A stretch of 64,000 bases of DNA from Trichosphaerium sp. ATCC 40318. Lineage: Eukaryota; Protista; Tubulinea. Position numbers and translations under genes: made by a program. Below are positions 4,975 to 33,400 of the stretch, piece after piece (positions within the stretch are counted from its first letter, which is position 1; each line of letters opens with the position of its first letter). The stretch lies in assembly GCA_038496445.1 (NCBI GenBank), contig JALMLS010000321.1:1-64000 (forward strand), in the 5' to 3' direction. Under the pieces are notes generated by a model, which had not been told where the DNA came from, searched no databases, and saw nothing but the letters and a program-made list of their open reading frames with translations.

Positions 4975-5858
4975 TTACTTACATTGTCCGTCTTCATACC
5001 ATTCCTTACATTTACCATACTGTTTACCATCAACAAATGTGCATTGAAACCTTAATTGTCCATTATCGTACCATCCCTTATTTTCACCATGTTTTTTACC
5101 ATCAACCCACATGCACTGGTACTTTAGTTGTCCATTCTTATACCATATCTTACTTTCACCATGTTGTTTGTCACAAACCCGTAACTTGTGGTACTGAAGT
5201 TGCCCATTTTCATACCATCCTTTACTGTCACTGTGTTGTGTATCATCAACCCAAAAGCTAATGTCCTTAAGTTGTCCATTTTCATACCATCCCTTACTTT
5301 CACCATGCTGTTTACCATCAGCCCACATACATTGCTCCTCAAGCTGACCATTATCATACCATCCCTTACTTTCACCGTGCTGTTTATCATCAACCCACAT
5401 GCTTTTTTCCTCTAGCTGGCCATTTTTATACCATCCCTTACTTTCACCATGCTGTTTACCATCAACCCACATACATTGCTCCTCAAGCTGACCATTATCA
5501 TACCATCCCTTACTTTCACCGTGCTGTTTATTATCAACCCACATGCATTGACTCTTTTGGTGTCCATTTTCATACCATTCTACACTAAGGCCATTTTTTT
5601 ACCATCAACTGATACATACTGCCTCTTAAGTTTTCCACTCTCATACCATTGTTTACCTATCCCACTCATACAATATTTATGAAGCCTTACCTTACCACTT
5701 CTATACCATTGTATCCATACTCCTTTCTTTTGTAACGCTTCATCAAAATGTGTATTAGTTGCAGCTCTCTTTGATAAACTGTGGAACTTTGTGAATACTT
5801 CTTTGTTGAAAGTACAAATGTAAGTTTGAAGTTCACGTGGAATATCCAGTAAACTCAT
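4975..5858 (-). CDS. Intronless F-box-like + MORN-variant (YwqK-type) repeat protein; one frameshift in a T7 run at 5594-5600
   Basis: N-terminus SLLDIPRELQTYIC is F-box-like; 24-aa repeats WVDGKQHGESKGWYENGQL follow. Adding one base to the homopolymer joins ORFs 5580-5867 and 4975-5544 (VDGKKNGLSVEWYENGHQKSQCMWVD). Confidence 0.8.
4990..5720 (-). repeat. 72-nt coding tandem repeats, including a near-identical duplicated block (about 5285-5402 and 5429-5546)
   Basis: Recurring cataccatcccttactttcaccatg/gtgctgtttaccatcaacccac units. Confidence 0.85.
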
Positions 5859-7116
5859 GGAGTGCAAATTACTTTGTATTTTTTTATGCTTTGTGGTAGA
5901 CTATAAAAAAAAACTACTGTCAGCAAAACACAAGGAGAACAAAAGAATCTGTTGGCAATCAATGTTATCAAAAGTATAATGTCGGTTTTCGGTTTCGCCA
6001 TTCACCGTTATTCAAAAAAAAAGTAAACACGTTTGTATTGGCTATGGTGTAATAAAAGGCCATAAATAAGTGTTCAGAAACTGTACAATGAGCATACACA
6101 GATTTAGTGAGTTTTTGAAGCGAAATACTGACAGCTCGTGGGACACGTGACCCACAAAAAATTTCGAAGAACAGTGTGTTCATTTTACATTGATAATCGC
6201 GTTAAAATATAGCTGTACGTACCATAGGAATACCACCAATACGCTTATAATTTTAAACCTATCTACTGTCTGTTAAATAGTTCTTTGCAGCGTATAAATG
6301 AAAGTCCAGTCAGTTCTTTTCACCGAAATTAAAACACAAAACAGTCAAAAAAATTCAAAAAAACCTAAAGAAACAAAGCGTCCAAGGTACGAAGTTTGCT
6401 TTACGTTAAAGGGTTCTTAAATTTAATAAAACTAACATACGCACGTGTTTAGAGCGATTAGCGTACAAATGGAAGAAAAAGACAGGGATAATATAAACAA
6501 GCGCCTATTCGAGCTTACTGCGTTACCTACTGAAATAATAGTGCTTATTCTGAAACAAAGTGACTTGTACGCTCCGTTCAGCCCAAACATGTCACCTATT
6601 GCGAGATATTATTCACAAACACGTTGGATACGGCTGTATCCATATCAGAACTGAGAATGAAGCTCAGTTGCTTGCAGGCAGTCCATTACTCCAAAATACG
6701 ACCATTCACTTGAGCTATTGTTATTCAATCGCAGATGAGGTCATTGAAGCAATGAATGGTGTACATAAAATCGGCTTGTCATACAGTGCATACTATCGAC
6801 TTGTATAGTTGTTATTCAATAACAGACAAGGGTATTGCGGCATTGGCAGGTGTACATAAAATTATTTTATCACATACAAATGTTACAGATGAAGGATTGA
6901 AGGCGTTGGGAGGTGTACACACTATTTACTTGTTTTGTTGTAAGTCAATAACAAACAATGGTATTGCAGCATTGGCAGGTGTACATGAAATTATTTTAGC
7001 AGGTACAAAGGTAACTGATAAAGGATTGAAGAGATTGGTCAATCTTTTTCCATACCATCGTGGCAACTCCTCCCAAATAGACTCTAGGCATTAGCGTTAT
7101 CAACGTAAGTACACCT

Positions 7117-7998
7117 ATGAGCGAAAACAACGGAAGTGCAGCAACTCCACAGACAGGCAATGAAAAGTTGGCCGGACTAGTTAAAGGGCTAATTAGCTCT
7201 AATCCAATCTCTACTACGGTGTGGTTGGAAATGGTCGCAAAATACAAGCGGCTTCCCGACAAGGTCGTTAACGGACAAAAGCCCGTTAAAGACCGTGGTA
7301 CTACTGATCTCCACAAGATCGTCCTAGAAGATGATTATGATCGCAAACGCGATACTGTGTACGATATTACCTCTTGGGCGCGTAAACGCGCCTTTCCTCG
7401 CAATTACTGTGTTTTTACGTGGTTTTTAATTTTATTTCTCGCCTTTAGTTCTGGAGTCGTTTTCGAGCGTCAAAAGATTGGTGTGGAGTTTAAAACTGCC
7501 TTGAATCACGCGGTATCGCTACTTTTTACCGAACAAGCCAAACTCTACGGTGAATTTCTCTTGGGTGCAGATGTTACGCCCAAACATGTTAAAAAAGCCC
7601 TCAATAATGGGTATATCTATGAACTCCGTGATGAGTGGGTTCCTATTGCGTACGGCAAAGTCAAGTACTTTGAATTCAACAATTGGGTGTGGCGTATTGT
7701 CCCTCGTAAGCCGGCTGCTCAAACAGTCACTTTTGTCGGTATGCCTAGCCACATTGGCAACAATCAATTTCGTGAAGCTTTAATCCAAGCTTACGATGCA
7801 AGTATTTCTTACGTTGAACGAAAGTTTGATGTAGACGGTTTCGCACTGAAAATTTTCAAGGTCGCTCTATCAAAGAAGTGTGACGAATTATGGAATGGTG
7901 GCAAGCTCACTGTCTCTCTGGAACATGAAACGATTCATATACAGTATTATACGGCCGAGGCGCCTAAATCTTCAAAATCAAAAAAACGTAAACGATGA
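7117..7998 (+). CDS. Retrotransposon ORF1 (293 aa, basic C-terminus KSKKRKR)
   Basis: Lies inside the element immediately 5' of ORF2; its TGA overlaps the ORF2 ATG (ATGA 7995-7998). Confidence 0.8.
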   Translation: MSENNGSAATPQTGNEKLAGLVKGLISSNPISTTVWLEMVAKYKRLPDKVVNGQKPVKDRGTTDLHKIVLEDDYDRKRDTVYDITSWARKRAFPRNYCVFTWFLILFLAFSSGVVFERQKIGVEFKTALNHAVSLLFTEQAKLYGEFLLGADVTPKHVKKALNNGYIYELRDEWVPIAYGKVKYFEFNNWVWRIVPRKPAAQTVTFVGMPSHIGNNQFREALIQAYDASISYVERKFDVDGFALKIFKVALSKKCDELWNGGKLTVSLEHETIHIQYYTAEAPKSSKSKKRKR

Positions 7999-10900
7999 GT
8001 GTTAAACGTGTTAACATTGCTTGCTGGAACCCTTGTGGTCTCAGCACTGTTAAAAAAATCAATTTCATGCATAATAAATTTAACATCCATAACTTGGATG
8101 TGCTCGCTGTTTCTGAGACGCACTGGCGTAAAAAAGTGCCTCAAAAAATTCTTTCTCTAGGTTACAAGGTAGTTTGGTCTCCTCAACCTCACAGCAGTTT
8201 TTGTGGTACTGCTTTCATTTGTTCACCACGTGTTAAAATTTTTTCTCAAACCTCACACTCCTCTGGTCGTTTGAACACTGTTACATTTCGAGTAAGGGCC
8301 ACCACGCTAAAAGCAGGTGTTGTCTACGGTCCGTCTAATGCCAAAGACCGTGAGGCGTTTCTGTCAAAAGTCACTCCTCTTTTACTTGATTTAGATTTTC
8401 TTTTAGGAGACTTCAATGTTGCTCTCTCCCATAACCATCTGCCTATGCATGCTGGTAGCTCCGATGGACGCTTACGTGGTGCTACCGAATTGGCAGATAT
8501 ATTGGCAAACAACAACCTCACACAAAGCGATTTCAAGTCCAGACACACATGCTGGCGTACAAATTCTACTTCCAAACTGGACTATATCTTCACAAACGAG
8601 AAGTGGCTCCAAAATCTGCTCAAATTTGAGCTCGATCCTCCTATCAACAACTATGATCACTGCTTTTTGGTGGCTAGGTTCTCTAACCAAGACCGTGCCG
8701 AGATGGGTAGTGGTAGATGGGTTCTCCAAAACTTTATGAATGACGTAGAAATCTTGGGTGATATTGCGTCTAAATTTAAAACACGCATTGATGGTGTAAA
8801 CACAATCAAACAGTGGACGCTCCTCAAACGCCAGATTGTAGAGCATATCAAGTCCATCCAAATCGATCTGGTGGCTCATATAAAAAACAAGCGCTGTAGT
8901 ATTAAGGATGACATGCAATACCATGCCACCGACAGTGCAGAGTACTTGGCTCTTAAAAACCAACTACACCATTGCGAACGCAGCTTTACTGAAGCGCGAA
9001 TGCTTAAAACTGGTCTAGGTGACTTCACTATTGATGAAGTGCCACAAAAACTCCTCACAGCACGTTTAAAGGCACGTTCTAAAAGCGCAATGCTCATGAG
9101 CATGCGCGATTCTGCCGGTAAAGTTCGTACCGGTACGTCTAATATATCATTCATACTCACCCAATTCTATAAGAATTTGTTTGCTGCTAAACTTACCAAA
9201 CCCCGACGTCATGGTAGGTTCCTCCGTAATGCTCCTAGAAATATACCTCTTGAACTATTAGAAAAGATGGCTGATAGCTTCACTGACAAAGAAGTCACTA
9301 CTGCCATCAAAAGTATGAAGTCTTTCTCATCTCCCGGGATAGATGGAATTCCTGCTTTCTTCTACAAGAATAATGCTACGTTCACGGCCATGTTCCGTAG
9401 AATATTTAATCACCTTTTGCGGCATCCTAAGTCCATGCCTCCCCAATTTAAAAAAGGACTTCTTCTCACACTTTATAAAGGCAAAGGCGATGTCCGTGAT
9501 CCTCGTAACCGTCGACCTCTGGCTCTCCTTAACACCGACTACAAACTCCTCACCACTCTTCTTAACAAGCGACTCCTCCCAATACTGGTACATGTTGTTG
9601 ACTCCACACAATGTGGGTTTGTACCAGGCAGGGATATTGCCACTAACATCATCACCTTGGAGGAAACTATCCACCAGGCTATCATCTCTGAAGCAGTACC
9701 TATGTACGATTTTGCCTTTCTAGATTTTCAAAAAGCGTTTGACTCTGTATGCCATAAGGCTATCATACGCACACTATCACACTTCAAAGTTCCTAGGCCA
9801 TTTATGCGACTAATCCAAGCCTGTCTAAGTGACACATGGTTCCAAATCGTTGTAAATCGCACGCTTTCAGAACCCTTCCAGATTACTAGGGGTGTAAAGC
9901 AAGGAGACCCTCTTTCTCCTACGTTATTTGTTCTCACTATGGAACCCATTCTGGTAAAGTTTCGTGAGAGGCTTAGTGGAATAGCTCTCCACAAAAAGCA
10001 CATTTCTTCCCTTGGTTTTGCTGACGATGTAGCTGCCATTAGCATATCACCTGAGGAGTCTCTCATTATACAGGACGTTCTCAGAGGAGCTAAAGCAACC
10101 ATAGGTTTAATTGCCAACCGCTCTAAGTGTTTTTCCATTTCAAATTTCGACGGCTGTGCCTTTCAGTCTGTTAACGAGGTTAGGTACCTTGGTACATCTT
10201 TTTGCAAGTCTACAGGTCTCAAAAATACCGTTTGGGATGTTGTTAGCAAGATGAATACTAAGGTTAGCCGCTGGCGTTCAATGACGCGTACCCTCATCTC
10301 CAAAAAAACCATCTACTCCTCTTATACTATCTCTCTTTTTACTTATCAGTTCCGCTTTATTCTAGCCAACCAGTGGCAGATAGCTGCTATTGAGAGGGCA
10401 GCCTCGACGCTGTTTTTTCCCTCCAAAGCTACTTATCGTAAGCCCTCTAGGTTATTCAACCCTATACATTCCGGTGGCTTCAGTCTGTTACAACCTAAAC
10501 GTTTTAACCTAGCACTTTTAGCCTCCACTTGGGAAAAATTTATTTTTAGTTATGGATCTGAGCCATACCACGGCCTGTGGAATCTGTGGTTTAATTACCA
10601 CGGTTCTCATTGGTCGAAGGAGGTGGCTTCATACCATTACACTCAATGCCGCAATGCGTGGCAGTCCCTAAATTCTCCTTTCAAGGGCCTCACTGAGGCC
10701 CAGATTCTTGCCAAAGTTGTCAAAGGGCCTAGAAGCGCCCGTGATCTGTATGCTTTCACATTAGATGAAGTGAAAGATGACCTCACACCTACCATCAAAA
10801 AGATGCTTAAGGTCCATGGTGAGGCACTTCGTAAAACCTTCACACAATTACACTCTTCCAAAATTTTTGCAAAGTTTCCTCTGTTGCGTGACTATGTTCT

Positions 10901-11270
10901 GCGTGCTATCTTGCGTATGTTAAACTGCAGTTTCAAGTCCGAACAGGACCATCCTTCTTGGATCCTTTTTAAATCGCCACCGGCTGATTTAGCTCGTCTG
11001 ACGGTTAAGTCGTTACAGTTAGCTTTTCCTTATAATTCTGACACACTTCACAAACTGTCTTCCTTAAGCTTGTATAATCAGGTAGCTATGGCTATACTGA
11101 TCAAATGGACATGGAAGATTTACAATAACGCTACACATTCGAAAGGTCTGTTGCCAATTTCGGTTCATAGAAAAGTAATTAAAGATGAGCTCGATGACAC
11201 ATGGAAACAGATTCAACACATATTCAACAAAACTTACATTTATCGCTACAACCTTACAATTACCATTTGA
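7995..11270 (+). CDS. Retrotransposon ORF2: AP endonuclease + reverse transcriptase (1091 aa)
   Basis: APE motifs WN, SETH, GDFN, LDYIF, YDH; RT motifs SSPGIDG, RPLALLNTDYK, DFQKAFDSV, GVKQGDPLSP, FADD, YLG. Confidence 0.96.
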   Translation: MSVKRVNIACWNPCGLSTVKKINFMHNKFNIHNLDVLAVSETHWRKKVPQKILSLGYKVVWSPQPHSSFCGTAFICSPRVKIFSQTSHSSGRLNTVTFRVRATTLKAGVVYGPSNAKDREAFLSKVTPLLLDLDFLLGDFNVALSHNHLPMHAGSSDGRLRGATELADILANNNLTQSDFKSRHTCWRTNSTSKLDYIFTNEKWLQNLLKFELDPPINNYDHCFLVARFSNQDRAEMGSGRWVLQNFMNDVEILGDIASKFKTRIDGVNTIKQWTLLKRQIVEHIKSIQIDLVAHIKNKRCSIKDDMQYHATDSAEYLALKNQLHHCERSFTEARMLKTGLGDFTIDEVPQKLLTARLKARSKSAMLMSMRDSAGKVRTGTSNISFILTQFYKNLFAAKLTKPRRHGRFLRNAPRNIPLELLEKMADSFTDKEVTTAIKSMKSFSSPGIDGIPAFFYKNNATFTAMFRRIFNHLLRHPKSMPPQFKKGLLLTLYKGKGDVRDPRNRRPLALLNTDYKLLTTLLNKRLLPILVHVVDSTQCGFVPGRDIATNIITLEETIHQAIISEAVPMYDFAFLDFQKAFDSVCHKAIIRTLSHFKVPRPFMRLIQACLSDTWFQIVVNRTLSEPFQITRGVKQGDPLSPTLFVLTMEPILVKFRERLSGIALHKKHISSLGFADDVAAISISPEESLIIQDVLRGAKATIGLIANRSKCFSISNFDGCAFQSVNEVRYLGTSFCKSTGLKNTVWDVVSKMNTKVSRWRSMTRTLISKKTIYSSYTISLFTYQFRFILANQWQIAAIERAASTLFFPSKATYRKPSRLFNPIHSGGFSLLQPKRFNLALLASTWEKFIFSYGSEPYHGLWNLWFNYHGSHWSKEVASYHYTQCRNAWQSLNSPFKGLTEAQILAKVVKGPRSARDLYAFTLDEVKDDLTPTIKKMLKVHGEALRKTFTQLHSSKIFAKFPLLRDYVLRAILRMLNCSFKSEQDHPSWILFKSPPADLARLTVKSLQLAFPYNSDTLHKLSSLSLYNQVAMAILIKWTWKIYNNATHSKGLLPISVHRKVIKDELDDTWKQIQHIFNKTYIYRYNLTITI

Positions 11271-11481
11271 CTTGTCCGGTCAACTGGGAGTTGGTTTTCT
11301 CCTCTAACATTCAGGTGGAAAGGATGGGAAGGGTTCAAATCCCTTTTAACATTTTGGGCGGAAGTTCGTAGCTTCACGTTTTTGGTGCTCTGTTGGCGAT
11401 CGAAGGAACTATGTATCTTGTATGCAAATAATTGCTTGTAATCGTTGGCTCGGTGAGCCGTCCTTGTATAGTAAACCTAGA

Positions 11482-11516
<35 letters not shown>

Positions 11517-11764
11517 AGAGATTGGCAGGTGTACACACTATCGACTTGAACAGTTGTAATTCAATAACAGATTCAGGTATTGTGGCATTGGCAGGTGTAC
11601 ATGATATTGATTTGAGTCAGTGTATGTTGATTACAGATTCAGGTATCAAAGCACTAAAGGGTGTTCATACCATCGATTTAAGCTACACCAATATTACAGA
11701 TAAAGGTGTTAAATCACTTGCTGGTGTTCATACTATTTATATTCAAGGTACATCAGTTACAGAT

Positions 11765-13210
11765 TTTTTTTTTTTAGAATAAGAGGCAGCGCGCTAGCGC
11801 CTACTTTATTACATATGGTATTGTTACATTGTGTTGGTTACATTATGTTAATAAACTTAAAAATAAATTTAATGTGCAATAGGTTCCTTCTCAACAGTAT
11901 ACTGACGTAAAACTTAGAAAGAGTCATTAGAAGTAAGTAAAAAGATGTAAGAAAGGAAAAGAAGGGGGGTTGGGGGGGAAGTTTCCCCCCCAAATAAAAA
12001 AAAAAAATCTCTTCAAATTAAAAACCACACTAAGTGCGGTAACTAGGTACAGGGAGCGCAATCGGCTCCAAATTTGCAAAGCAAATTAGGAGGAAACGCG
12101 ACCCCTCAATGTTAATTATATATCGATCCTAATCTATAAACAGGTTTGGAAATTCGTTGTTCATTAGTAGGAGTTAAAAATTTACTTAGAATGATTGTAC
12201 CGTCTGGTAGAATTTGGTCGACTCCACTTCCAATAACAAATGCAGGTGTATTAATCTGTAATCTCCTTAGACTTTTATGTTCTGATATAACCTCTGAATA
12301 GTCCATCTGTACATTACACTTGAATCTATTTGTAGTCCATCTGTTTGTGTCTTCATTTTTGTATATCCAGTTGACATCATTTACAGTTCCATTATATTTC
12401 GCTAGGATCATCCAATTTATAAACTTATATCTAATCTGTTGTCCTGATAACCATTTTCCTGTAGGTACACCATGTTTAATGTCATTCCTAATGATCCAAG
12501 TAATCGCTAGAATTATTCCTATTTCCAAGAGGTGATGAACTGACTTGCAATTCTCTAAAGATGTTTTAAGTGATATACCTGGTTTGCAAAATAATAATAA
12601 ATCAAAAACTACTTCCATTATCTTATTAGGTACCGACCAATCATAAAATATTTCTTCATGTTTCTCTGGAGGAAATGCATCTTTTTTATGTGTTACTGGA
12701 AGACATCTCATAATAAATCTCCATAAAATATCTCTAATATAGCTTACACCTTTAAATTTGTTTAGTAGTTTGAGTATGGTTAAATTAAAAATAAGGTTTT
12801 TTCTAAAGTGGGGTTTTAGACGTGGGATGATTCTTTTTCTTAAGATTGATGTAAAAAATTTCACTTTTCTGAGCGATTGAGCTAAGAGAAAAACCTCCTT
12901 GAGAATGGAAGAGAAAGTTGAGACCAAGACACACAAGAATATTTCTTTTTCTTGTCAAAAACACGAGAAACATCCCACAGGAACCAATTACACATTAATG
13001 AGTTTAGCAGTTGCACTAGGAGGGATTGAGAGGTCTGGTGAAATAGATTAGTTGGGATTGGGCATACGATTTGAAAATATTAATTTTTTGACGAATTGTT
13101 TTACACAAAGGTTTCCACTTTACTAGTTGTACTGTTATCTTCTCTATAGTTCTGTTCCAATCAAAATTCAGTCCATCGTCACTCAAAGTAAAGCCTAGAT
13201 ACCTAATACT
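11765..13210 (-). mobile_element. 5'-truncated non-LTR retrotransposon of a second family, antisense, with 16-17 bp TSD
   Basis: TSD GTACATCAGTTACAGAT at 11748-11764 and 13211-13227; poly(T) to 11775; RT C-terminal remnant IRYLGFTL...KW...KINIFKSYAQSQLIY plus ORF 12112-12936. Confidence 0.9.
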
Positions 13211-14339
13211 GTACATCAGTTACAGATGAAGGTGTCAAAGCATTGCATGGAGTTCACAAGCTTGAAAAATAAAAAATGAATCATTGAATGGATTATGTGA
13301 GCATAAGTGATGACAGATAACATACAAATCGACATTAAATTGACTTAATGTATGTACACAGGGATAGTTGATATTGCTAGCATTTTTTACTTTTTAATCA
13401 GGTAAAACTTTCCTTTGTTAAAAGCCACCAATAAATACTCCAAATTATCACTTTGCGGCATTAGTAGTTTCAGACTAAAGTGAAGCCTCAAATGATAGAT
13501 GAAGTTTCAGAAAGTTATATATTGGCAAGTATCTTTTTTTTGTAACTATTAGTTGTTATCTATTGAACGAAGTCTCTGGCATTGACATGATACTAGTGTC
13601 GAATAAATAACAAGTAGCTCCAACCAGATGGGGTGAGATTAGATTCCATTTTACCCACTCGATTCAGGAACACGTGTTGAAGGCGTCATTGTCAGACCAC
13701 TTTGTTGTTTCATACAACAAACTCAAAGTCGTTTTGATTAAAACCCTTATTTCTCTGAGGTTATGATGAGGTATTGCTCGTGGAAATACGTATTCGATTC
13801 AGAGAAGGCAAAGGAGATGTCAAAAAGAGGCACAAGGTATTTCTTCATTTTTTTGGATTTTTTATTCGTTTTGTCTCGCTGAGTCTTGGAGGAAAAGGAT
13901 GTTGCCCCACATGGCTTATCGCTCACCAAGTGAGTCAAAGCAAGCTGTTATCATTTTCTCAGTTGACTTCGAAAAAAAAACAAGACAAATTCAATCTGTC
14001 ACTTCTCCTCTATTCAGTACGTTCTACATCTCGTAAAGAATCCTATGCAGTCAATAATAACTACTATGGGACGCGTGATCCACATGTATTCTCTCGAAAA
14101 TATCTTTGGTGTTTCTTGGGCTTCAGTTGTTCATTGGAAAGAAGGACAAGATGCCACAATTGATAACGGTAAATGGAGTGTGATCAAAAACTAAACAAAC
14201 AAAAATTGGGAGCCAAGGAAAAGTGGCTTGCAGTTTTTTGGTTTTTTTTGGTTTTTTTGCGTTTTTTTTAGTGCGGGTGATCGAAAGAAAGCTCCGATTT
14301 TTATCCCTTGAGATGTATAAATTCGCACAAAGAATTATT

Positions 14340-15253: not shown

Positions 15254-15399
15254 ATGAATAGACCAAACTCGACCTTGCAACACCTGTACTTGCCATGACA
15301 ATACAAATAAAAGTCTTTTTAGTATTTTGTGTACATCTTAACACCGGTCCTTTGTCGCTCTTAGGCAAAGCAAGTAACCCTAGTCATAGCGTAATCTAG

Positions 15400-17605: not shown

Positions 17606-17829
17606 GTTTAATCGTATGAAAAAGCGATAAATGGCACGTGATAGTACTTCTTTTCAATCAAATTGGTTCCGGAGCAGAATGCTGTTAGTATACACAAGAA
17701 AAAAGCCGGGGCTCTAAAATGTGTGTTCTTAGCCTAGTGAAGTTTGAGTTAGCTGGTTGAGGTCTCCACCTTTTTTGCTTGTTCACTTATTTGGCCAGCT
17801 AAGGCATAAATGGTAAATTGAAATAATCA

Positions 17830-19045
17830 AGGATGCAGTATGTGTGTGGACAGATGGGTCACGTATTCGTATAGCAGCTAGCAATAATGCTGGTGTTGGA
17901 GTTTTTTTCGGCGAAAACAATAGGTGTAATGTCGCATGCAGAGCGGTTACTAAACAAGATATTGACGCTGCTGAATTGGAAGCAGCTATCATAGCTATCA
18001 AAGTTGTGCCTGCGTATCATAAGGTTAGAATAATCACTGACTCCACATATGTAATCAAGGTTGCTACTGCAGATAAAGTGTGTCCGTTTTCGCCTAACGC
18101 AACTATTGTACAAGAACTTCGTGAAGCGATTAGTAATAGGCGTACTGAAGGAGGTATTGTGTCATGGCACAAAGTGCCTAGCCATTATGACAACAAGGTT
18201 AGAGCTTACAAAAGACGACCTAAAAAAATGAAGGCTTTACGTAAAGAAATGACAGAGCTGTAATATACGTAAGTATATAGATACCAAGCACAAAGAGAGT
18301 GCTACAGCTGAAATAGTTAAGCGTAGGCCTATCATGTGTGCAGTGGATATGGTATTGTCTACAATCAATGGCGGTGTAGCGGATTATTCTATGTCTAAAC
18401 ATGGTTTTGTTTAAAGCTAGAAACAATAAATTGTGCAGTCGTAGTATGATGCATAATCGAATTCGTCCTGGATGGAAAGGAGTTGATCCTAATAAGTACT
18501 CTGATGGTGTATGTGTCTTCTGTCCCTCTGAGGAAACCACTATGCATATTCTAGCGGACTGTGTTGAGCATGAACACATATGTGTACACAACGCTAAGCG
18601 TATTAAAAAGGTTATGGAAGCTAATCTTCCTGGAGTTAAGTACAAGAGGTTTTGGCCGTCCTCTAATGATCATGCCAGCTTTAAAGCTAGGCATGCACCT
18701 TCCGCTGAAGTGCGGGTGTTGGGTGCAAAGGCGTATATACCCGCTGGTCTCTCTGATAGCATTGTTGAGCAAGGTTTTAAAAAGAAAATAGTGACCAAAA
18801 CACTTAAAGAAGTGCAACACATTTTGGTTAACAACACGCATGATATATATATCAAGGTGTAAAAAGCGCGAGAGGAATGGTGGAAGTATAGCAATAGTGA
18901 ATATGTTGAATGTCCTGAATTGGACAGCATATATAGAAGGTTTGTAGAACCGCCTATTAAATAATTTATTAATTATAATTATACCGTCCTGGGGTGAATT
19001 TCGATCCATGGCATAAACTAAAGAAAAATAAAATAACAATTGTAC
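17830..19045 (+). mobile_element. Degenerate 3' fragment of an RNase H-containing non-LTR retrotransposon
   Basis: RNase H motifs WTDGS, AELEA, ITDS, WHKVPSH, then zf-RVT-like CVFCPSEETTMHILADC. Intronless, broken frame, A-rich end, no TSD found. Confidence 0.75.
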
Positions 19046-19516: not shown

Positions 19517-19993
19517 GTAAAGTTTATGGGTTTTTACTGTTCTCATTCTTTTCCCTATGTACCCAATACAGATGAGGATGAATAACAGATTGACTAACTT
19601 CTGATTGGAACAAACTGTATTTTGCCAAATCATTTAATGTAATACGGCGAGAGCAGCTTTATAAAGTATTTATTACGTCGGGTCAACCCGTAAACATGAA
19701 AATAGGGCGCGACAGATTGTTGGGTTTTAGGACTGAGTTTACTAAATTATTTAAAGCCAATTGTACAGCTCTTTAAAAAGTGACTATGATCACACCAAAA
19801 AGGGTACCGATAATCTGAGTTTACCCTTTGAAGTCATCAATTTGTTTAAGAATCCCTGCTAAACGCTTATTCCAATGAAGCTACTTGGGTCAAAAAGCGT
19901 GTCTAATGTGCGAAAATACTTTAATAAATGTGCTTCTTTTTGGCGTTAAGTACTACCACCGTGGCTAAAACATGCCAATTCTAAAGCTAACAC

Positions 19994-20546
19994 ATGATGA
20001 CCGCATCTACTCTCTTTATAGTATTGTTAGGATTAATTGCTACATCTCTAGCTGATAAAAAACAAGTTCCAGTGCCACCAATACCTCCACTACCAAACAA
20101 CTTTCCAATACCTCCTTTACCAACCACAGGCTCCATTCCGATACCGCCAATACCAGGGAACTTTCCAATACCACCAATACCAAATACAGGAAACATTCCA
20201 ATACCACCAATACCAAACACAGGAAACATTCCAATACCACCACCAATACCAAATACAGGAAACATTCCAATACCACCAATACCTCCAGTACCACCTGTAC
20301 CAGTCATCCCAACGCCACCAATACCACCTGTACCACCTGTACCAGGAAACGTCCCAATACCACCTATTCCAGGTAACGTGCCAACTACGCCACCACCTAC
20401 TGTAACACCTGCTTCAGTTGTACGTTTTTTTCTCTTTTTTTTTTTTGGCCGTTTCGATTTCGAAACGCTAACTTCTTTTTTAGGCATCACAGCTCTATTT
20501 TTCTGCACTTGTACTTGTTGCTTTGTGTATTGCGCAGCTCTTGTAA
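19994..20546 (+). CDS. Secreted, probably GPI-anchored Pro/Ile-rich repeat surface protein (intron 20420-20483)
   Basis: Signal peptide; repeats PIPPIPNTGNI; the spliced C-terminus ASQLYFSALVLVALCIAQLL* resembles a GPI signal; branch point GCTAAC at 20467. Confidence 0.75.
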
Positions 20547-20609
20547 CACAATAAACTTCATAATTTTTCAAATAGTAAATCACGTGGTAATAATTTGAGA
20601 TTTAGTGAT

Positions 20610-23000: not shown

Positions 23001-23239
23001 GAGTGCACACGAAGTATCTCGCAACCATAAAAGGAAAATGTTTGGAAAAATAAGAAACAATTTCCAACTTTGTTATTCTCAACAGATTTCACGATGTTTC
23101 TCGGAAGATTTGATGATGCTTTTGTCAATCTAGGACTTGCTCTGTAAGCCAACCGCCCCAAACATTCGAATTTGTAGGCTTAAGATACACACGTTAACTT
23201 AAAGTCGTCACTACCTTTTTTAGGAAAGTTGAAAGCCAA

Positions 23240-25499
23240 ATGCAACAACGCTTCTATTTTGTTTTTATCGTCCTGGTTACGCTATGCGCACTAAATGCGT
23301 ATACGCAACCTACAGAGAAGTACAGTACGTGAAATAGTTTACTTCAATCCCTTTGTACTAACGAAACAGCTTGCAATCTATTCGTTGCGCCATGGGGCAA
23401 CGATAATAACGTACGCCTATCCAAAAAACACATTCTAGAAACAAGTCACCTAATCAAAGCTTAGACTTACGTAAATCGTACATCTCCTTTCCGTACAGTG
23501 TCTAAAGCACTGGAAATGGTGAAAGACGAAGTGCAACAAACAATTATATGTCTTGATGGTGAGCTGTAGTCTTTTTGAAAGTATTTTTTTTCAGAAAAGT
23601 CTTTTCGAAAACAAATCACTTTGTCACGTGCAACAACCACTTAGCTTTGATTACTTTTTTATAGGTGGAGACTATGAGCCAAGCGGTACCTATTATATGA
23701 CTGCCATGGGCGAGAGAGTAATAGCGCACCAACCATGGCAAAATATTGGTTCAGCAAAGAGAGTTAAAGTCATGGTATGTTCTGGACAACTTGTTAAATA
23801 TCTATTACTTACTTTGGTAAATACGAATAGTTTGAGTTCGATGGAGGTTTTCTTTTTACCATTGATGGATTAACAAACCCTGATCTGAACTTTAAGGTTA
23901 AGGATAATGATTCCATAATTAATCTAACAATTGTTGATACGGCAATAACCTCTTCAACCAGTACAAACAAAATCCTCACTAGTTGCAATTTTTGGTTAAA
24001 GTAGTTTTTTTAGATATAACATTAGGTGGTGGTTCTAACACTGTTGGAAGTGTAACTTTAACTAATTTGACTGTTACCAGCAATATGACGTTTTTAACTG
24101 CCTCTTCTTCTCATGTTTCAGTATTTGTGGAGAACTGTACGTTTGCATATAGCACTTATAAGATTCAAGGTACTGGCAAATAACAGAGACATTGAAACTA
24201 AAAATACCTTGTAGCAAGTTTTGTGAGTATCGTGGATAGCTATTTTAGTCTGGAGGAAATTGATAGATCTCTAGAGGTTACAAGCATAAACATTGATTTT
24301 AATCGGAACACTGTTTATGGTTGTGACTTTAATCCACTTTTTGTCGACATTCCAGTTTGTTTGTATTTCAACTCACCATCAAATATTTCCGGTTCTCTCG
24401 AAGTCACAAGTAACACTTTTATTGGATCAAACGCTTATTTTGCGTATGTAATACTTCCAGATGTTATACAATACAACGTTCTAGTAACTGAAAACAAGTT
24501 TGGATGTCTTGTAAGTGTATTTTTTTGTGCACTGTTAGAAATCAGAAAGTAACAATCTTTTCACTTCTAACGACCTCTGTAGGAAAAGAACAAGACTGAT
24601 TTTAGAGCTATTTATTTTTCAGATAATATAAAAAACCCAGATGTTTCGGATAACACTATAGAGTGCCAAAGTACGCTACCATTTCTTTTTTTTTTTTTTT
24701 TTTTGGGTTCTTTCAAAGTTGTTCTTATCAAAATTATAGTCAATTGCTCATCGTCATACCGTCAGAACGGTTCTGTTGCGTGTCTAATGTGTCCAAAAAA
24801 TGAATTTCAAAATCCAACCTATCCTACCATATGCTCTTGCCCACGTGGTGAGTTTTCACCTTTACAAGGTATATGTGCTCCGTGCCATTTTGGTACTGGT
24901 GGGTATGTAACTATATTACATTGCTAGCGTTAATTTGCATTCACAGAACATCAAATGGAACATGTGAATATTGTGTAGGAAATACATATGCTGATAGCAG
25001 CGGACTACCAAACTGTAAAATTTGCCCAAAAGGTCAACAAGGTGCTCATCGTGAAGGACAGAAGGGTAACACATTCTGTGAAGGCATTACTCCTTCAACA
25101 GCTTCGCCAACAACTGTTTCTCCAGCAGCTTCACCAACAACTGTTCCTCCAACAGCTTCGCCAACAACTGTTCCTCCAGCAGCTTCACCAACAACTGTTC
25201 CTCCAACAACTATTCTGCCGTCAAGTCCAATAACACACTCGCCAGCGGGTTCTTCCCCCACAGTTGCTCCCACTAATGGACCAACGAGTCCGTCAAGTAG
25301 AGACCCTGTACATAAAAAAGTGAACCCACTTATTTTCGTCGGTGCAGGCATAGCTGCAGTAGTCATAAGTAAGTATCTTTTCATTATCACGCTGCTTATC
25401 CTATTTTTATCAATCTAAACGAATTTAGTTACTCTTGTGATTGTTGGAGTAGTGTTTTTCTACCGCAGACAAACCTTCGGCTACACTCGTGTAGATTGA
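23240..25499 (+). CDS. Type I membrane protein: signal, beta-helix-like ectodomain, Cys-rich (TNFR/GCC2-like) repeats, S/T/P stalk, TM, short tail
   Basis: LFVAPWGND..SPFRTVSKAL; CLMCPKNEF, CEYCVGNTY, CKICPKG; ASPTTVPP repeats; TM; tail YRRQTFGYTRVD* with a YxxPhi motif. Confidence 0.7.
25096..25210 (+). repeat. 27-nt coding tandem repeat, about 4 units (xASPTTVPP)
   Basis: cagcttc(g/a)ccaacaactgtt(c/t)ctcca units. Confidence 0.85.
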
Positions 25500-26050
25500 G
25501 GTATTTAAATAACCAAGAAATAAAAAACCAAAATAAAACATTTCCGCTTGTGCCTTTGTCAAATGCCATAATTGGCCGAGTTTGATGCTTCAAAAAGGAC
25601 TACTGTGGTTTATATTTGATTTGAATACTCACATGTTTATTGTGTACGTAGTAATGCCTTGGAAAAAGCAGAACAAAAAACATGAAGTGATCTCAAACAT
25701 TACAAGTTTTTTAGTTTGGACTGTCAAAAAATAAAGCGACTACCAGTTTTAGCAATGTTGTAAGTCAGGTTTCGTTTGAGTAGTAGTTTACACCGCTTAG
25801 TATCTAAAATAATGCTATTTTGTGATAGCACTATGTATAATTTTCCAGGATGGGTTGTGAACATAGGTAGCCCATATCCCTACATGTATTTGTCTTATCT
25901 CACTACCCCAATCTATCTTTAATGAATGTTGTCAGATGTATTCCACTGCCTGATGCAGTTACCCTAGCACATATATTTGATAAGCCTTTGACTTGTTTTT
26001 TGAACAAAACAAACAATTCTTGATGTCTTTTCTTTATTTATTTACAGATA

Positions 26051-29000
26051 TTATGCTAATCCCGTTGTAGATGCATTTTTTATAACATCGGTAATACGTG
26101 GTTGTATTGCTTCAGGTGAACTTCGCTCAAAATGGTCGTAATAAAGTGCTTGGGCTGATTTTGCTATTTCAACGTGTATTTTAAGCTTTGGGCATTGATG
26201 GCGGAGGTCCCAGAAAAGAAACTTGCTTGTAATTTGTCTACAAAAACTAACATCGAGTGTTTCTAGTTGTACACATCTTTGTAATAATTTTTGAATACTA
26301 GTAATATACCATTAGACTCAACATACTTAATAAAAAGCAAAGCAAAAAAAAAAGAGAAAAAGTTTGTTTTTCTTGGACATTATCACGTGTTTGTTTCAGT
26401 TTCTTAATTTTACACGTACCTACTATTTCCAATAGTGCTCATATATGACATATTTAGTTCCTAGACGATTTTGAGTGTTAGGTTATTGTATATGAAAGAT
26501 CAACCCGGAGGTTGTGAGGTACCTTTAGATTTGTGCAGTGTTCGCTTAGGGCAATAACACTCATATTTGTTAGTGCTTTACAACGTGATATATACAAAGA
26601 CTCAAGCCCAGTTAGATCTTTAATCATAGCTGTGAACCCTTGAAAAGGAATTAAACAAAGCGGAGAGTAAAATTCACTGAAACGGAGATTATCCGCTTAT
26701 GAACCAAAAAGATTATTAGATTCGGTGGCGACAGGATTCGAACCTGCGAGCCACAAGGGCACTTGGTCTCAAATCAAGCTGCTTTAACCAACTGGCTACA
26801 CCACCGCTGTATGGATAAACAAGCGCTGTGGCGCAGAACACCCCAGAAAAAAAGCGAAACAACATGTACAAAGCCTGTGACTTTTTTTTTCTTTTTTTTC
26901 TTCGATTTTTGCGTACCAGAGTTAGTGGTGAGTCCACATTTACCCATTGCAAGAGTCTTAAGATTTGAAGCATAAGCACCAAGAGCAGCAAGAGATCTAT
27001 CTACACAAATTGAATTAACAAACAACCAAACAAACATTAGATCAGTGAAATAGTGTCGTACTTGAAATATTTGAACAACCAACAAATCCTAGTGTATCAA
27101 GAAGAGGGCATTTTCTTGCCAATGAAATTATAGTTACATCAGTAATCTTTTCACAACTATGCATTGAAATAGAACGTAGATTAAGTGGCTTCATATCAAT
27201 ATTATTCAAGAAAGCAAAGTTATGATTGCCAAGAGATCCATTGAATGATAAGATCAATGATGTCAACAGTGTACATCTAGTGAATAAATTCTCTAATGAT
27301 ACACCACTACAAACAATCAAAAGTCAAAAAAAGCAATAAGTTAGGTAGAAAAAAAATCACGTTTTTTTCCTTTGTGTTGACGTACAAATACTGATTGCAT
27401 TGTGTAAGATCTAACGCTTCTAATGCTGTACACTGCTGAGTGAGCATCTCAATAGCAGTATCCGTTACTTTTGTTGCTGTCAAGTCCAAGTCAGTTAGTG
27501 CAGGAGCATGTTTGAATAACATCATGATACTCTCATTGTTTACAGCCATACATTTGCGAACACAAAGGCGTTTTAAGTTTTTAGCATAAGGAGCAAAGAA
27601 GTGAATACATTGAGGTGATAGTGTAGGACATCCGCTTAAAGATAACTCTGTGAGGTGTAATGCTATAGCAGGTGTTTTCAACTTATAGCAAAACGTAGTA
27701 TTCATGGTCAAGTTTGCCCACATTCCCAACAATAAAGTCTGTTAAAGGAAATCAGATCATACACCTTTTCTGAGAATTACACGTGCCTTAACGTTAGGTA
27801 AATTCATATCTATACCCATTATTGAAGCATCTGTTATAAGACTACTCCCGGATAGCGTCAAATGTTGTATTGTCGTTAAACTTTTTGGTAAATTCAAAAA
27901 AGTGTCATCTGTAAAATTAGAATCTCCGGCAGTCAATTTTCTTCACACAGTAAGCAACAAATATTGATGTATTTACGGCAATAATGCGCACGTGAGTTTT
28001 TGCCACGGAGGCAATCGATCGATATTACCACAACCGGAGATATTAAGCTCTTCAAGTTGAGGCAAGAAAGTTGCAAGTTTTGACAAACCTAAATGGACCT
28101 CCATTTAGTTTCGTTGACTTCGTTAGCACTGCGAAAACTTAATTACCTTCATTATCAATCTCTGCATAAGGTATATCTAGTTTGGTTATATTTACAGAGA
28201 ATTGAGCCAAACTCAAAAGAGCAGGAACACTAAAGGGCGATGCATCATGGATAGTAAAAGAAGATAATTGACCAAGTTTTTTTGAGAGCACAGGGAATAT
28301 ATACATGTCATAGTGTGGTCCTCGTTTTAAAAATATCTAAGGCGCATGTGTTACGTCCACAATATTAAAATAAAGAGGCACTCATCTATATTACCTCAAC
28401 ATGAGCCAACAGTCTAAGATCGGAAGCTTGGTTTACACTATCAATTACTCTTTGCTTTAAGACATCATCTTGTACGCCCAATACTGTCTCATACAACCCA
28501 CCTACTCGTTTATACACTTTATGTGTGTCTTGCAGTTGTTTCACATGATCATTTCTATGTAAAGTGTATAACAGTCCCGTATCAAGCTTGTAAAGAATGT
28601 TAGTTAACAAGTGATTTTCAAGAAAAACCTGAGTGCTCTCTATTTTAAACAACTCTTACAACGTTAAAACAACAAGTTAAAGTTCTTTTTGCTATTGCTT
28701 GAGATTCAGTTATTGAGCTAAGGTGAAAACACGGCGCAACGTCAAAAAAGACAACAGCATTTACATCAAAACATGTCTTCGTACCGAGTAGTCAAGAAGT
28801 ATCTCTGCAAACTCTAAACTTGCTCCAGCATGTGTTTCATCTATAGACAGAGCTTGCTCTACTTTCTATTGATATATAAGCCACACAGACTTAACTCTAG
28901 ATTAACCGTACCTCCATTGCTTTTTTTAGAAACCAAAACTTTGTTGAAGAGTGATCTGACCTGAAATTCAGAGCAAATAAATGCAATGTACGACCCCACT

Positions 29001-31815
29001 CGTAAAATGCAAGTGTAGAGTTAGGTACTACTTTTACAGCTTGCTAAAGAAACACCATAAGAAGCAACCAAAGTACTACCCGAACCGTTTAAAGAACATT
29101 ACCTGAAAGCATCTGAACGCTCTGTAAAATAATCGCCTTGCTTCTGCTCCCTGAAATACATTAAATTATGTCTACACTCGTTGATTATATGTAAATTACC
29201 GTCCTTTGTTGAGCTTCAAGGCTAAGAGCCTACAACCAAACCTTAGTTGAAAGAAAAAAAAAATCAAAAAATTCATTCTCACCATGGCATCGCTTTGAGA
29301 AATAATGTTCATTGTTTTCACTAAAGCTTCGCGTTAAACTAGAAAACAAACAAACAATATAACGAAAATGCATTGATGAATAAATGCAATGAAGAGATTT
29401 ATACAAACAACAACATTTCAAGAAAATATTTTGGGATGCTCTTTTTAGGAATTACCTTTAACTCCAATTGAGACAATATCAGAATGTACTCTAACTTTGT
29501 TAGTAATCTTAAGCTTTAAGTATAGACGTACAGTAAGGTTGTTCCATATTCTAACACAACAGCTGCATCATCTTGTATTTTAATAGCTGTTAACACTTCC
29601 AATCGTTCAAGCAAGCTTCTAATTGAAATCAAGTCTAGCAGATTCACCTTGAAGGCATTAGCACGCATGATAGCATTTTGTTAATTCCTTACCTCTTCTA
29701 AACCTTCTGCTGATGACAAAGAGAATAGAAATTTAACCGAAACAAGCTGTTTAATTGTCTAGGAACATTAAACCACAAGCAAGTCGAGAAAAAAAAGTTG
29801 TTACCTTGGTCCAAAAAACTTGTCGGCTTTGAACAAATATCTGATTGTAGTAGTTCAATACAGACCTTATATACGGATCCTAAATGCTTTGAAATTAGAC
29901 TGATATTTAATAATACAAAGCATGTATTGCATACCGCACGTGGTACACAGATTTGTTTCATTTTTTCTCGTAGAATATATTTTAACTGATCTTTAAGTGT
30001 TCTTGCAACCATCTCAGTAAGTATCTGTTGTCGTTTTTGAAGTGATTTGATACCATATCTAACAAAACCCAAGTGACGTATATTAATCCCTTTCAATGAC
30101 TATCAGCTAAGAACAGATCGACTCTTTTTTTTCATACCCCTTCGATGAAGATTTTCTAGGATTTTATCAATACTCATGGACTTCCTGGCATCAAGCCATT
30201 TCGCAAACTCTGGTATAATTGTAGATAGCAACTTTCTACAAGCTTCTTTCACCTTTACAATATCAGAAAAAGCACAATAACCTAAACCGTGGCTAACCTC
30301 TGCATCATGAGTGCTTTGGTTCGGATCGTATCTACCCATTCCGCAAAGAGCATCAGAACTTAATGGACAAGAGTTAGATCTAACTAGTTCAGGTCGAAGA
30401 AGCTCGTAAAGGTGAGTTTTAGGGCCGCTACACAATTGTTATCCAAATAAGGCAGAATAGCGTACTCCTTTCTTATCTTGACTTGTGGAGGAAAAACACG
30501 TGCAAAATCAATGAGATAGTACTCGTTTGGGTTTGGTCCACAATGGCCCTTTTGAACATTAGTATTATCTCATACTGTGGTACGATACCTCAATATCAGC
30601 TGGTCCATAAATAGTAACTTGGTCTACACCAGCAACATGACGTTTTAAGTTAAGAACCTGTAAAAAAAATTAACCATAGCAACAAAAAGCAGTTTACCTT
30701 AGCTGCTTTTGACATAAGACTAGCAAACTCTTTGTCTTTCGAAACTACACCCTGGCCTTGTATAAATTTAATTAACATAAAATCCATCGTGGCAAGCACA
30801 AAATACTTACCTCCATCGCTTGAACCATAAATAAGTGTTTCATTGTTTATTGGCAACATGCTAACAGCCAGCACACGAAAACCTCGATAGTCAATAGAGC
30901 AAACAAGAGGTACATTTAAGTTTGGTATATGACAATTATAAAAGCAGTTACAAGCCTTTAATTCATGTGTTGCTGCTTTCATTGCGTTTTGATCTGAGCC
31001 ATATAAATTTTTAAGATCAAGTGCCACCTTTAAAAATGTTTAAGATATAATCAGGAAAAGTTTATCGCCCTCATACAGCACGTGAAAAAATTCAAATCAA
31101 AAATAGGTACCTTGAATAGTATGCCTTGACACATATACTTACGACCTACAAAGCATAACTTAGCTCAATGACAAGCAGTGTAAAGAATTTATAAATAATT
31201 TTTTTTTTCGCTCATTGAGCTAACTCTTACCTCCAGCAATCCCTGGCAAGTCTGCGCGGCTTATATTTTGCAAATGAGACGGTAAATATAACTCGGTTAT
31301 TATAATCCTAGCATATAGAGTAGCAGCGTAAACAAAATCGCGTCCGAGACTTGACAACGCTTGAAACTTTGCAATTGAGTCTGGCATCAATAGAATCTAT
31401 TAAAAACGTTAATTGAGGTACGGTATCAATACGCTAGTGCATTGTTATGGCGATGAAAGTAGCCTACAAACTATTAACGTACGTTTTGAAATTCTGCGTT
31501 CCAATCTTTCTCAAATTTGCCTGTGGCGGTATTATTTTCTGTTTCTAGCGTTTCACAGGCGTCGTAAGGTGAAAACACTGTTTGTTCTTTCTAAAATGTT
31601 TTAATACGCGTTTACGCCCTTAAATATCGTACGTTATTGACTTCGCTCACGTACATGTCGCTTGACGCATTTTCAACAGTTGAATTATAACTGTACAAAC
31701 AGTAATCTGGCGCGAAACTGCGTACAGGATCTTTTACAGGGTTGCTTTCCTCGTACGAGTATAAAGCACTCTGTTTCGCGTCATAGCCTCCAAAACCTTC
31801 TTTTTTATCCGCCAT
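26051..31815 (-). CDS. Clu-domain protein with helical middle region and C-terminal cysteine-containing LRRs; many introns
   Basis: RDWNAEFQ, GIAGG-RKY, YGSDQNAMKAATHELK, IDYRGFR, YGSSDGG, GPADIE, DFARVFPP, LYELLRPELV, LHRRGINIRHLG (Clu), then LRRs LTDLDLTATKVTD, CEKITD. Confidence 0.8.
26723..26805 (-). tRNA. tRNA-Ser(TGA)-like gene with long variable arm, inside an intron; atypical D arm
   Basis: Acceptor GGTGGTG/CGCCACC+G73, anticodon loop TTTGAGA, variable arm GCC..GGC, T arm GCAGG TTCGAAT CCTGT; T5 terminator shortly downstream. Confidence 0.72.
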
Positions 31816-32123
31816 GTGTTTTACTATGACACTAATCGCTACCACGAGGTCATACTAGCTAATTGGGCTACAGGTGTCAATGCACGTGATTAAGTGAGAG
31901 CGCATAAGCCGTGTACTCTTCTGCAATTCTACAGAGTAGTAATAACGGCATACTGCGCTAGATCATAAACATTAGCGCAACTAAGCCAATTTACATGAGG
32001 TTCTACACTTGTTGCAACTGAAGCTCGGCAAATACAAGATGTTTTGGAAGAATTTGTTTGTTTACTATTTGACATAGTTATTAAATTAAAACAGTAAAAT
32101 GATGAGTGTCTATTGTGGTTGTA

Positions 32124-32861
32124 TCAGATTGTAGAAAGTCCTAATTCTTTATACTTGATACCAGCTTCTTTAACAGCTTTCTTTGTGATGTTCCCTGTAC
32201 CCAGAGTAATTGTTTTAAGACTAGTCAAGTGTTTCAAGCAATCATTTGTTATACATCTACATCCATTGAGTTTGAGGTGTTCAAGATTGACTAAATGCTG
32301 TAGCCCAAAGTCTGTTATATTGTTACTGAAACTCATCAAAAGAGTATTGACATTTGTCAATTCCTTAATACCATCATCTGTCACTGAATGGCCATTCAAA
32401 ATATGGACTGTGTGTACACTACTTAGGTGCTTCAGCCATGAGTTTTTTGGATCTTCAAGGGTGATTTTGTGAACATCTTTTAGTGCCTTTATTCCATCGA
32501 CAGTTAAATAATCACAACCAAAAAGGTTTATTGTGTGAACACCGTTGAAATACTGAATTAAATCAGAAGTACCTTTACTGTATGTCAAGTTTATTCTGCG
32601 AACCCCATCAAGGCAGGCAACATTGTCCAAGGACAGGTTGCAACGATAACAATCGATTGTTGTATTTTTAAGCAACGGGCTGCCTTTGAGAACCTCAAAG
32701 TCAGATGGATTCTTTATAATAATGTATTCAAGCCCAATATTGTTTCGTATGATGTTATTGAAAAGGTGAGACACAATAGAAACGATAATACGTTGCTTTC
32801 TTGGTAATAACCGTAAAACATACGTTATTGTCTCTGGTGGTAGTTCATGAAGATTTTGCAT
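32124..32861 (-). CDS. Intronless F-box + LRR (VHTI-type) protein, intact
   Basis: LHELPPETITYVLRLL F-box; GSPLLKNTTI; repeats VHTINL..ITDDGIKEL; homologous to the gene at 6469. Confidence 0.85.
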   Translation of the reverse strand: MQNLHELPPETITYVLRLLPRKQRIIVSIVSHLFNNIIRNNIGLEYIIIKNPSDFEVLKGSPLLKNTTIDCYRCNLSLDNVACLDGVRRINLTYSKGTSDLIQYFNGVHTINLFGCDYLTVDGIKALKDVHKITLEDPKNSWLKHLSSVHTVHILNGHSVTDDGIKELTNVNTLLMSFSNNITDFGLQHLVNLEHLKLNGCRCITNDCLKHLTSLKTITLGTGNITKKAVKEAGIKYKELGLSTI

Positions 32862-32956
32862 TTAGCAGTCTACTGTTGAATGGGTTTGCACTTTTTTGGT
32901 GATGGTAGAAGGTCAAACGGGAGTCAACAATTTTCTATTTTTGTTTTCAGAAAGGT

Positions 32957-33400
32957 ATGACTCAACGAAAGGACAACGGAGATTCATCACAACACGTGAA
33001 TCTGCTATCTATGCCCATAGAGCTACACCATATGTGTATGGATATCGATAAATCTACAGCATATCAGTACTGGCCTTTATTATGTTACCATACAGCGTCA
33101 ATAACAAGATTTGATCACAATTTTCAAAAACATGGTGTTTGGTGTAATTACAAGAAAAGAGTACTTCGTGCTCAGTGTCGCTTTGAAAATGGTGTGAAAG
33201 TGGGGGTATTTAAGTGCTGGACTCAAGAAGGTAAATTATGGTGCGAAATGCCTTATGAACAAGGCAAGAAACATGGAGAACAAAAGCTTTGGATAAATGG
33301 AAAGGAAATAGTATACAAATATGTGAATGGTGTAAAACAAGAAAGTCGCAATAATGACCGCCGAAACACTGCCAGGGCCATGGATTACGATTACTGGTAG
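32957..33400 (+). CDS. Intronless F-box-like + short MORN-variant repeat protein
   Basis: LLSMPIEL...TRFDHNFQKHGVW...FENGVKVGVFKCW..YEQGKKHGEQKLW; homologous to the gene at 4975-5858. Confidence 0.78.
   Translation: MTQRKDNGDSSQHVNLLSMPIELHHMCMDIDKSTAYQYWPLLCYHTASITRFDHNFQKHGVWCNYKKRVLRAQCRFENGVKVGVFKCWTQEGKLWCEMPYEQGKKHGEQKLWINGKEIVYKYVNGVKQESRNNDRRNTARAMDYDYW

Follow-up and report, generated by a model that had tools for sequence, protein, structure and literature searches.

The draft genome of Trichosphaerium sp. has a GC content of 37.69% and 8.7 introns per gene, and 1568 of its gene models have been described as giant-virus-like, with F-box and MORN as their commonest domains (PMC10521059). 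The virus groups that these gene models mainly match were named as donors (PMC10521059) and were also found here for LRR2, one of the genes described below. Repeat-family expansion in amoebal viruses is noted in a further paper (PMC5753266). A head-to-head pairing of a leucine-rich repeat (LRR) gene with a MORN-repeat gene is not described in the Trichosphaerium genome paper (PMC10521059), and it is this arrangement that is reported here from a window of Trichosphaerium sp. ATCC 40318 DNA (the whole stretch analysed, 64,000 nucleotides of contig JALMLS010000321.1). The window contains two such pairs, MORN1/LRR1 (pair 1) and LRR2/MORN2 (pair 2). With a probability of roughly 0.6, these are two old paralogous copies of one divergent pair, belonging to lineage-expanded, intron-less families of putative Skp1-cullin-F-box (SCF) adaptors, and their common arrangement reflects duplication followed by default linkage. 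The families themselves are known and the window genes are new members of them.

Two divergent LRR/MORN pairs in the window

The window is eukaryotic, with multi-exon genes and retrotransposons, and within its 64 kb two divergent pairs were located 26 kb apart, each consisting of one LRR gene and one MORN gene placed head-to-head (Table 1). In pair 1, the ATG of MORN1 on the minus strand lies at 5858 and LRR1 starts on the plus strand at 6469, leaving a gap of 610 bp; in pair 2, the ATG of LRR2 (minus strand) at 32861 and that of MORN2 (plus strand) at 32957 are separated by 95 bp. These start positions and gaps bear out an earlier reading of this DNA made from its letters (hereafter the sequence-only reading), which had proposed that the same divergent pair occurs twice. 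Exactly two MORN-type N-terminal domains were detected in the 64 kb using a hidden Markov model (HMM) of the family, and no further member of either the LRR or the MORN family was found in the window by tblastn. When two genes per family were placed independently among 15-30 genes, both pairs were head-to-head at P ~6e-4 to 2.5e-3. The arrangement of both pairs is not random, and independent placement is unlikely.

Both partners are homologous across the pairs, as had been claimed: the pieces of LRR1 share 35-38% identity with LRR2, and the N-termini of MORN1 and MORN2 share 28% (E=1e-7). No nucleotide similarity was found between pair 1 and pair 2, and no paralogy was found among the genes that flank them. 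MORN1 and MORN2 are each nearer to MMETSP transcripts (43-46% identity) than to the other copy (29%), and therefore the duplication of the pair, if there was one, is old. The two copies also fall on opposite sides of the family tree, which was built on 55 columns only. The spacers differ six-fold in length, and the k-mers and motifs common to both were not above shuffle expectation. GC content is ~0.37 throughout the window, and both pairs, at 0.36-0.40, are the same as their surroundings.

No intron was seen in any of the four pair genes, whereas neighbouring genes (the cytochrome P450 copies and an FBXL-like gene) have several exons. The description of all four as intronless is correct to that extent, but the interval 6469-13272 is not one long intronless LRR gene, as it had been taken to be. 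Approximately 5.9 kb of it consists of two retrotransposon insertions, each with target-site duplications, and the coding sequence proper to the gene is spread over more than one frame.

Table 1. Coordinates of the pair genes, their spacers and the inserted elements in the window
Feature	Position	Strand	Description
MORN1	4975..5858	-	F-box-like N-terminal domain and MORN_2 array; one frameshift
Intergenic region, pair 1	5859..6468	.	610 bp, GC 0.34
LRR1	6469..13272	+	F-box-LRR gene; own coding sequence ~0.9 kb, two retrotransposon insertions, frameshifts
Full-length non-LTR (long terminal repeat) retrotransposon in LRR1	7039..11512	+	ORF1 (open reading frame 1) 7117-7998, ORF2 7995-11270, both open
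5'-truncated retrotransposon fragment in LRR1	11765..13210	-	poly(A) read as a run of T on the plus strand
LRR2	32124..32861	-	intact F-box-LRR gene, 245 aa
Intergenic region, pair 2	32862..32956	.	95 bp; candidate bidirectional promoter
MORN2	32957..33400	+	intact ORF, 147 aa; F-box-like N-terminal domain and ~3 degenerate MORN-like units

The LRR and MORN gene families

LRR2 matched the Pfam F-box model PF00646 (E=4e-6; 27.0 bits, cut-off 20.5) as well as LRR_4. Its AlphaFold2 model (predicted local distance difference test score, pLDDT, 81.8) has N-terminal helices followed by ~8 strand-helix units, with a pLDDT >90 in the repeat part. A word search of 5.8 billion proteins returned a single relative, P0001, a 354-aa product of an MMETSP transcript that itself carries an F-box (Pfam F-box E=3.3e-6, F-box-like E=3.1e-6). 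The C-termini of LRR2 and P0001 align, and LRR2 is therefore full-length, with fewer repeats. A premature stop in LRR2 had been considered when a gapped tblastn alignment with P0001 ran beyond the stop codon; this was rejected, given that the downstream translation is not LRR-like and that the true C-termini align. Using a profile of the LRR family, the best natural PDB sequence match was FBXL2 (E=1.3e-14), and internalins were matched too. Together with the Pfam matches to LRR_6 (in LRR1) and LRR_4 and the ~8 units of the model, these profile matches identify the repeat part as an LRR solenoid. Exact-sequence look-ups of LRR2, of MORN2 and of ORF2 of the inserted retrotransposon returned no record.

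The pieces of LRR1 matched Pfam LRR_6 at E ~1e-11. One frameshift is shown by homologous high-scoring segment pairs in two frames when LRR2 and P0001 were used as tblastn queries, and we infer a second from the position of the start codon. The pieces of the broken genes were searched singly, unjoined across frameshifts or insertions, and under these conditions the first piece of LRR1 gave no Pfam F-box match and no BLASTP match to LRR2; the F-box match is missing because the N-terminus is split between frames.

The larger insertion in LRR1 carries all the hallmarks of a LINE-type (long interspersed nuclear element) retrotransposon. Its ORF2 encodes an endonuclease of the apurinic type and a reverse transcriptase (Exo_endo_phos E=8.5e-6, RVT_1 E=2.4e-31 in Pfam), it ends in a poly(A) tail at 11485-11512 that was reported by Tandem Repeats Finder (TRF) as a 28-nt A run, and it is flanked by a perfect 13-bp target-site duplication (7026-7038 and 11513-11525). 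No Pfam match was obtained for ORF1. The insertion looks recent, and the family may still be active. The second, truncated insertion is flanked by a 17-bp target-site duplication (11748-11764 and 13211-13227), and its ORFs are colinear with the stretch downstream of the reverse transcriptase domain in ORF2 of the first element (E=2e-5 and 0.017), of which it is a distant relative. Elsewhere in the window, an ORF with an RNase H domain (Pfam E=2.7e-12) and an adjacent ORF at 17844-18862 probably represent the 3' end of a further retroelement.

Among the MORN genes, the repeat piece of MORN1 matched Pfam MORN_2 (PF07661, with units of ~22-24 aa) at E=1.9e-34 and 114 bits in 6 stretches, and TRF resolved its array into 8.3 copies of a 72-bp period at 77% identity; MORN1 is accordingly classed as a MORN_2 repeat protein. 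Its N-terminal piece and its repeat array lie in different frames, which indicates one frameshift, and the MMETSP relative P0059 aligns to it in two frames. The N-terminal domains of MORN1 and MORN2 were recognized by the family HMM at E=1.7e-23 and E=3.8e-25, respectively. MORN2 alone falls under the Pfam MORN_2 cut-off (15.7 bits against 29.6). The proposal that repeat number differs between the copies stands, with 8.3 units of 72 bp in MORN1 and ~3 degenerate units in MORN2.

The last ~28 codons of MORN2 are copied at 37015-37092 together with an adjoining P450 segment. It was considered whether MORN2 had been cut off at the junction of this P450 duplication, and this was rejected, as the frame and the MORN-like pattern continue over the boundary and the second P450 copy has the MORN2 end. 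The end of MORN2 is native, because the second P450 copy holds a duplicate of those codons and the frame crosses the boundary. The P450 copy starting at 37015 carries the MORN2 end, and therefore the P450 duplication is later than the placement of MORN2. The cytochrome P450 segment itself is present three times at 77-95% nucleotide identity (33315-35800, 37015-38112, 40025-41178 and 44798-46797).

The N-terminal domain of the MORN family was found in 46 proteins at E<=1e-3 in a large profile search, and MORN_2 repeats are carried by 39 of 48 aligned family sequences. Nearly all of the 20 relatives that were looked up are transcripts of marine protists, either from MMETSP or among the 1-kb transcript contigs of the Joint Genome Institute (JGI). 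Trichosphaerium was itself sampled in MMETSP. A word search with the N-terminal region of P0059 returned only P0059 itself. By sequence, the domain could not be placed among F-boxes: none of the 48 family members matched the Pfam F-box models (PF00646 and PF12937), even at E<=10, a PDB sequence profile search with the MORN family returned MORN-like parts only and no F-box signal, and hhalign aligned only 16 columns of the domain with the F-box of the LRR family (probability 1.4%).

The predicted structure of this domain is confident (AlphaFold2, pLDDT 87.9) and forms a bundle of three short helices, at residues 8-17, 19-28 and 30-36. A Foldseek search of the PDB ranked F-box proteins (D3/MAX2) in the top 6 positions and also returned Skp2 and cyclin F, all at E>=2.4, and in a viral library ~30 of the top 50 matches were annotated as F-box, the best at E=0.09. 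The query was 57 residues long, and weak E-values are expected at such a length. F-box and MORN-repeat proteins from Orpheovirus, Pandoravirus and Marseillevirus predominated among the viral matches, with Orpheovirus MORN-repeat proteins the best among them (probability 0.99). The modelled fold thus suggests an F-box-like domain, and membership of the F-box family is not seen by sequence. The label "F-box", which had been applied to all four genes, is upheld for LRR2 by its Pfam match and applies to the MORN genes through their predicted fold only. Given that the Pfam F-box models miss the MORN-family domain, counts of F-box genes in such genomes are probably underestimates. The best metagenomic MORN_2 matches (P0003, P0005 and P0010) often have an N-terminal DUF5758 where the window genes have the F-box-like domain, and MORN_2 arrays appear to have been joined to N-terminal heads that vary from lineage to lineage.

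The window is dense in F-box genes of various kinds. Apart from the two pairs, F-box-related genes of other types comprise one exon from an FBXL-like LRR gene that is spliced and an ORF with a weak F-box match (E=0.0086), at 27307-27732 and 48177-48824, both on the minus strand. At 19987-20583 and 24873-25418, proline-rich low-complexity ORFs occur on both strands; an ORF in these regions is cysteine-rich, then Thr/Pro-rich, with a C-terminal hydrophobic stretch, and is possibly a surface protein.

Duplication, module or capture

Duplication of one pair is the simplest account of the locus because it needs only one original adjacency to give the same picture. An ancestral adjacent LRR/MORN pair would have been duplicated in inverted orientation, and its tight adjacency would then have persisted by default, with no need of selection for a two-gene module. 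Pair 1 is now decaying: LRR1 has taken two retrotransposon insertions as well as frameshifts, and MORN1 has a single frameshift. Pair 2 is intact. For each protein, what is known of the families suggests that the N-terminal domain may dock on Skp1 and the repeat domain may present a substrate for ubiquitylation. The earlier view of the genes as variable-repeat F-box-type adaptor families agrees with their domains and differing repeat numbers, with docking on Skp1 proposed by analogy.

Outside the window, two loci with flanking sequence around a MORN-family member were available, and neither has an LRR neighbour. The first (L002:722-1992) belongs to a transcript contig of 2 kb in a JGI sample derived from MMETSP and encodes P0144, the closest relative of MORN2, which lies 240 bp head-to-head with an ORF of the Complex1_LYR family; the presence of two opposed ORFs on a single "transcript" points to transcripts that overlap or to carried-over genomic DNA. 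In the second, on an 11-kb eukaryotic metagenome contig (L001:1586-2362), a gene predicted in bacterial style joins an MCM exon to a MORN-family N-terminal domain that has hardly any MORN repeats, and this member is probably a remnant beside an unrelated gene. Within Trichosphaerium, MORN_2-type genes make up ~2% and F-box/LRR-annotated genes ~0.7% of gene models, judged from the listed rows of Table S2 (PMC10521059). Among ~9 MORN-type contexts in those rows, none has an annotated F-box/LRR neighbour and 4 have unannotated neighbours; many neighbours in the listed part of the table are without a BLAST match. The same rows show a YwqK-type gene adjoining a "Harvfovirus8_11"-like gene (TRSP10581/10582) and a small bacterial-like gene between another YwqK-type gene and an F-box/LRR gene (TRSP11227-11229).

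Several of these observations weigh against duplication with default linkage. The two listed cases just named may be further pairs of like kind, and the outside sample is tiny: a metagenome contig of 11 kb, whose family member is probably a fragment, and a transcript contig of 2 kb. The same partner and orientation were kept despite the distant positions of MORN1 and MORN2 in the family tree, and an old conserved unit would look alike. In addition, the frameshifts of pair 1 could be errors of long-read assembly; the two insertions could not.

A functional two-gene module, in which the genes are kept head-to-head, co-regulated from a common promoter and act together (e.g., in one pathway or in defence), would fit the pairing and divergence of both copies in the window (2 of 2, P ~1e-3 under independent placement), the persistence of linkage between deeply diverged partners and the spacer of only 95 bp in pair 2, which may serve that pair as a shared bidirectional promoter. 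The possible further adjacent cases among the listed Table S2 rows point the same way. The breakage of both genes in pair 1, however, is evidence against strong selection on the unit, and the six-fold difference in spacer length, the lack of a motif common to the two spacers and the other neighbours of both outside relatives (a LYR-family ORF being the head-to-head partner at L002) all speak against it, as do the ~9 listed contexts in Table S2 (4 of them with unannotated neighbours), where no annotated F-box/LRR neighbour was seen. Such a module is judged unlikely. The persistence of linkage through much sequence change, which the sequence-only reading had emphasized, is to be expected by default of genes that lie 95-610 bp from one another and hence is no evidence of selection; its co-transcribed cassette had to be dropped, since divergent genes cannot be co-transcribed and could have at most a common bidirectional promoter on spacers without a shared motif. 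Its suggestion of a host-defence module found no counterpart either, as no PADLOC model matched and no NB-ARC or other immune-receptor domain was detected using Pfam. A stronger form, in which corycid amoebae would have retained the pair as an ancient, conserved unit that may have passed as a whole between them and giant viruses, with a bidirectional promoter and two cooperating SCF adaptors, one copy living and one dying, is highly doubtful. That members of two abundant families came to lie side by side by chance alone, without any duplication of the pair, is scarcely credible: the frequencies in the listed Table S2 rows do lead to an expectation of ~8 adjacent pairs genome-wide, ~2 of them head-to-head, but two pairs 26 kb apart in a 64-kb window where neither family has an unpaired member would be improbable, and LRR1 and LRR2 belong to the same narrow subfamily, to which the word search of 5.8 billion proteins added a single relative.

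Both families had also been likened to giant-virus proteins, and the structural models agree with this. The LRR2 model matched LRR/F-box proteins of Harvfovirus, Hyperionvirus, Catovirus, Tupanvirus and Barrevirus (the Klosneuvirus type) over its whole length, with E down to 2.6e-11 and 20-30% identity, and the modelled MORN N-terminal domain resembles Orpheovirus proteins, as described above. A further reading is capture of the whole pair from a giant virus, or its exchange with one, by way of a viral fragment on which the two genes were neighbours and which integrated and was later duplicated. Intron-less genes in an intron-rich genome (PMC10521059), the two sets of structural matches and the naming of the same virus groups as donors (PMC10521059) would suit such an event. 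On the other hand, neither pair shows a compositional or contextual anomaly (a GC shift or viral neighbours), the flanks being spliced cellular genes without viral hallmark genes. The library that gave these structural matches was viral only, so that a best match to a virus is not a comparative result. DNA-pattern scans of IMG/VR with LRR2, the MORN1 repeats and a family member recovered generic MORN parts only and no close viral relative, and a DNA pattern drawn from the family alignment likewise recovered generic MORN parts only from viral and metagenome collections. Capture of the pair as a unit is decidedly unlikely.

As the evidence stands, the locus mainly illustrates the birth and death of gene families, through internal repeat amplification, duplication of a pair and the loss of one copy, recently destroyed by a retrotransposon that still appears intact. 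If the conserved unit were true, it would represent a rare instance, in a protist, of two ubiquitin-ligase adaptor genes in a fixed arrangement and a handle on the role of the F-box and MORN expansions common to amoebae and giant viruses.

Comparison with known systems

The FBXL-type proteins, SCF substrate adaptors such as human FBXL2 and Skp2, have an N-terminal F-box followed by an LRR solenoid, as do LRR2 and P0001. LRR2 differs from them in being much shorter (245 aa), intron-less and a member of a narrow lineage-specific subfamily, and its binding to Skp1 is putative. The giant-virus-like genes of Trichosphaerium (PMC10521059) are like the window in GC content (37.69% and ~0.37), in their intron-rich genome, in their F-box and MORN domains and in the virus groups matched. 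Among giant viruses themselves, the F-box/LRR proteins of Klosneuvirus-type Mimiviridae and Pithoviruses and the MORN/F-box proteins of Orpheovirus, Pandoravirus and Marseillevirus have the same architectures and sizes; the window genes, in contrast, are only 15-31% identical to them and lie among spliced cellular genes at host GC.

The repeats of MORN1 are similar to thousands of MORN_2 proteins of the YwqK type from bacteria and metagenomes (annotated in bacteria as the antitoxin of YwqJK), hundreds of which are 35-52% identical to them. Bacterial and metagenomic relatives of this type have other domains at the N-terminus (e.g., DUF5758 or DUF7666) or none, whereas the window genes have the F-box-like domain. 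Unlike the YwqJK toxin-antitoxin system, the window genes stand in a eukaryotic context without a toxin partner, with an F-box-LRR gene and spliced genes as neighbours and no PADLOC match.

Plant nucleotide-binding LRR (NLR) receptor pairs have in common with the pairs described here a divergent orientation and a short spacer (610 bp and 95 bp here). They differ in that Pfam scans of the window pairs show only F-box, LRR and MORN_2, and in that one of the two pairs has decayed.

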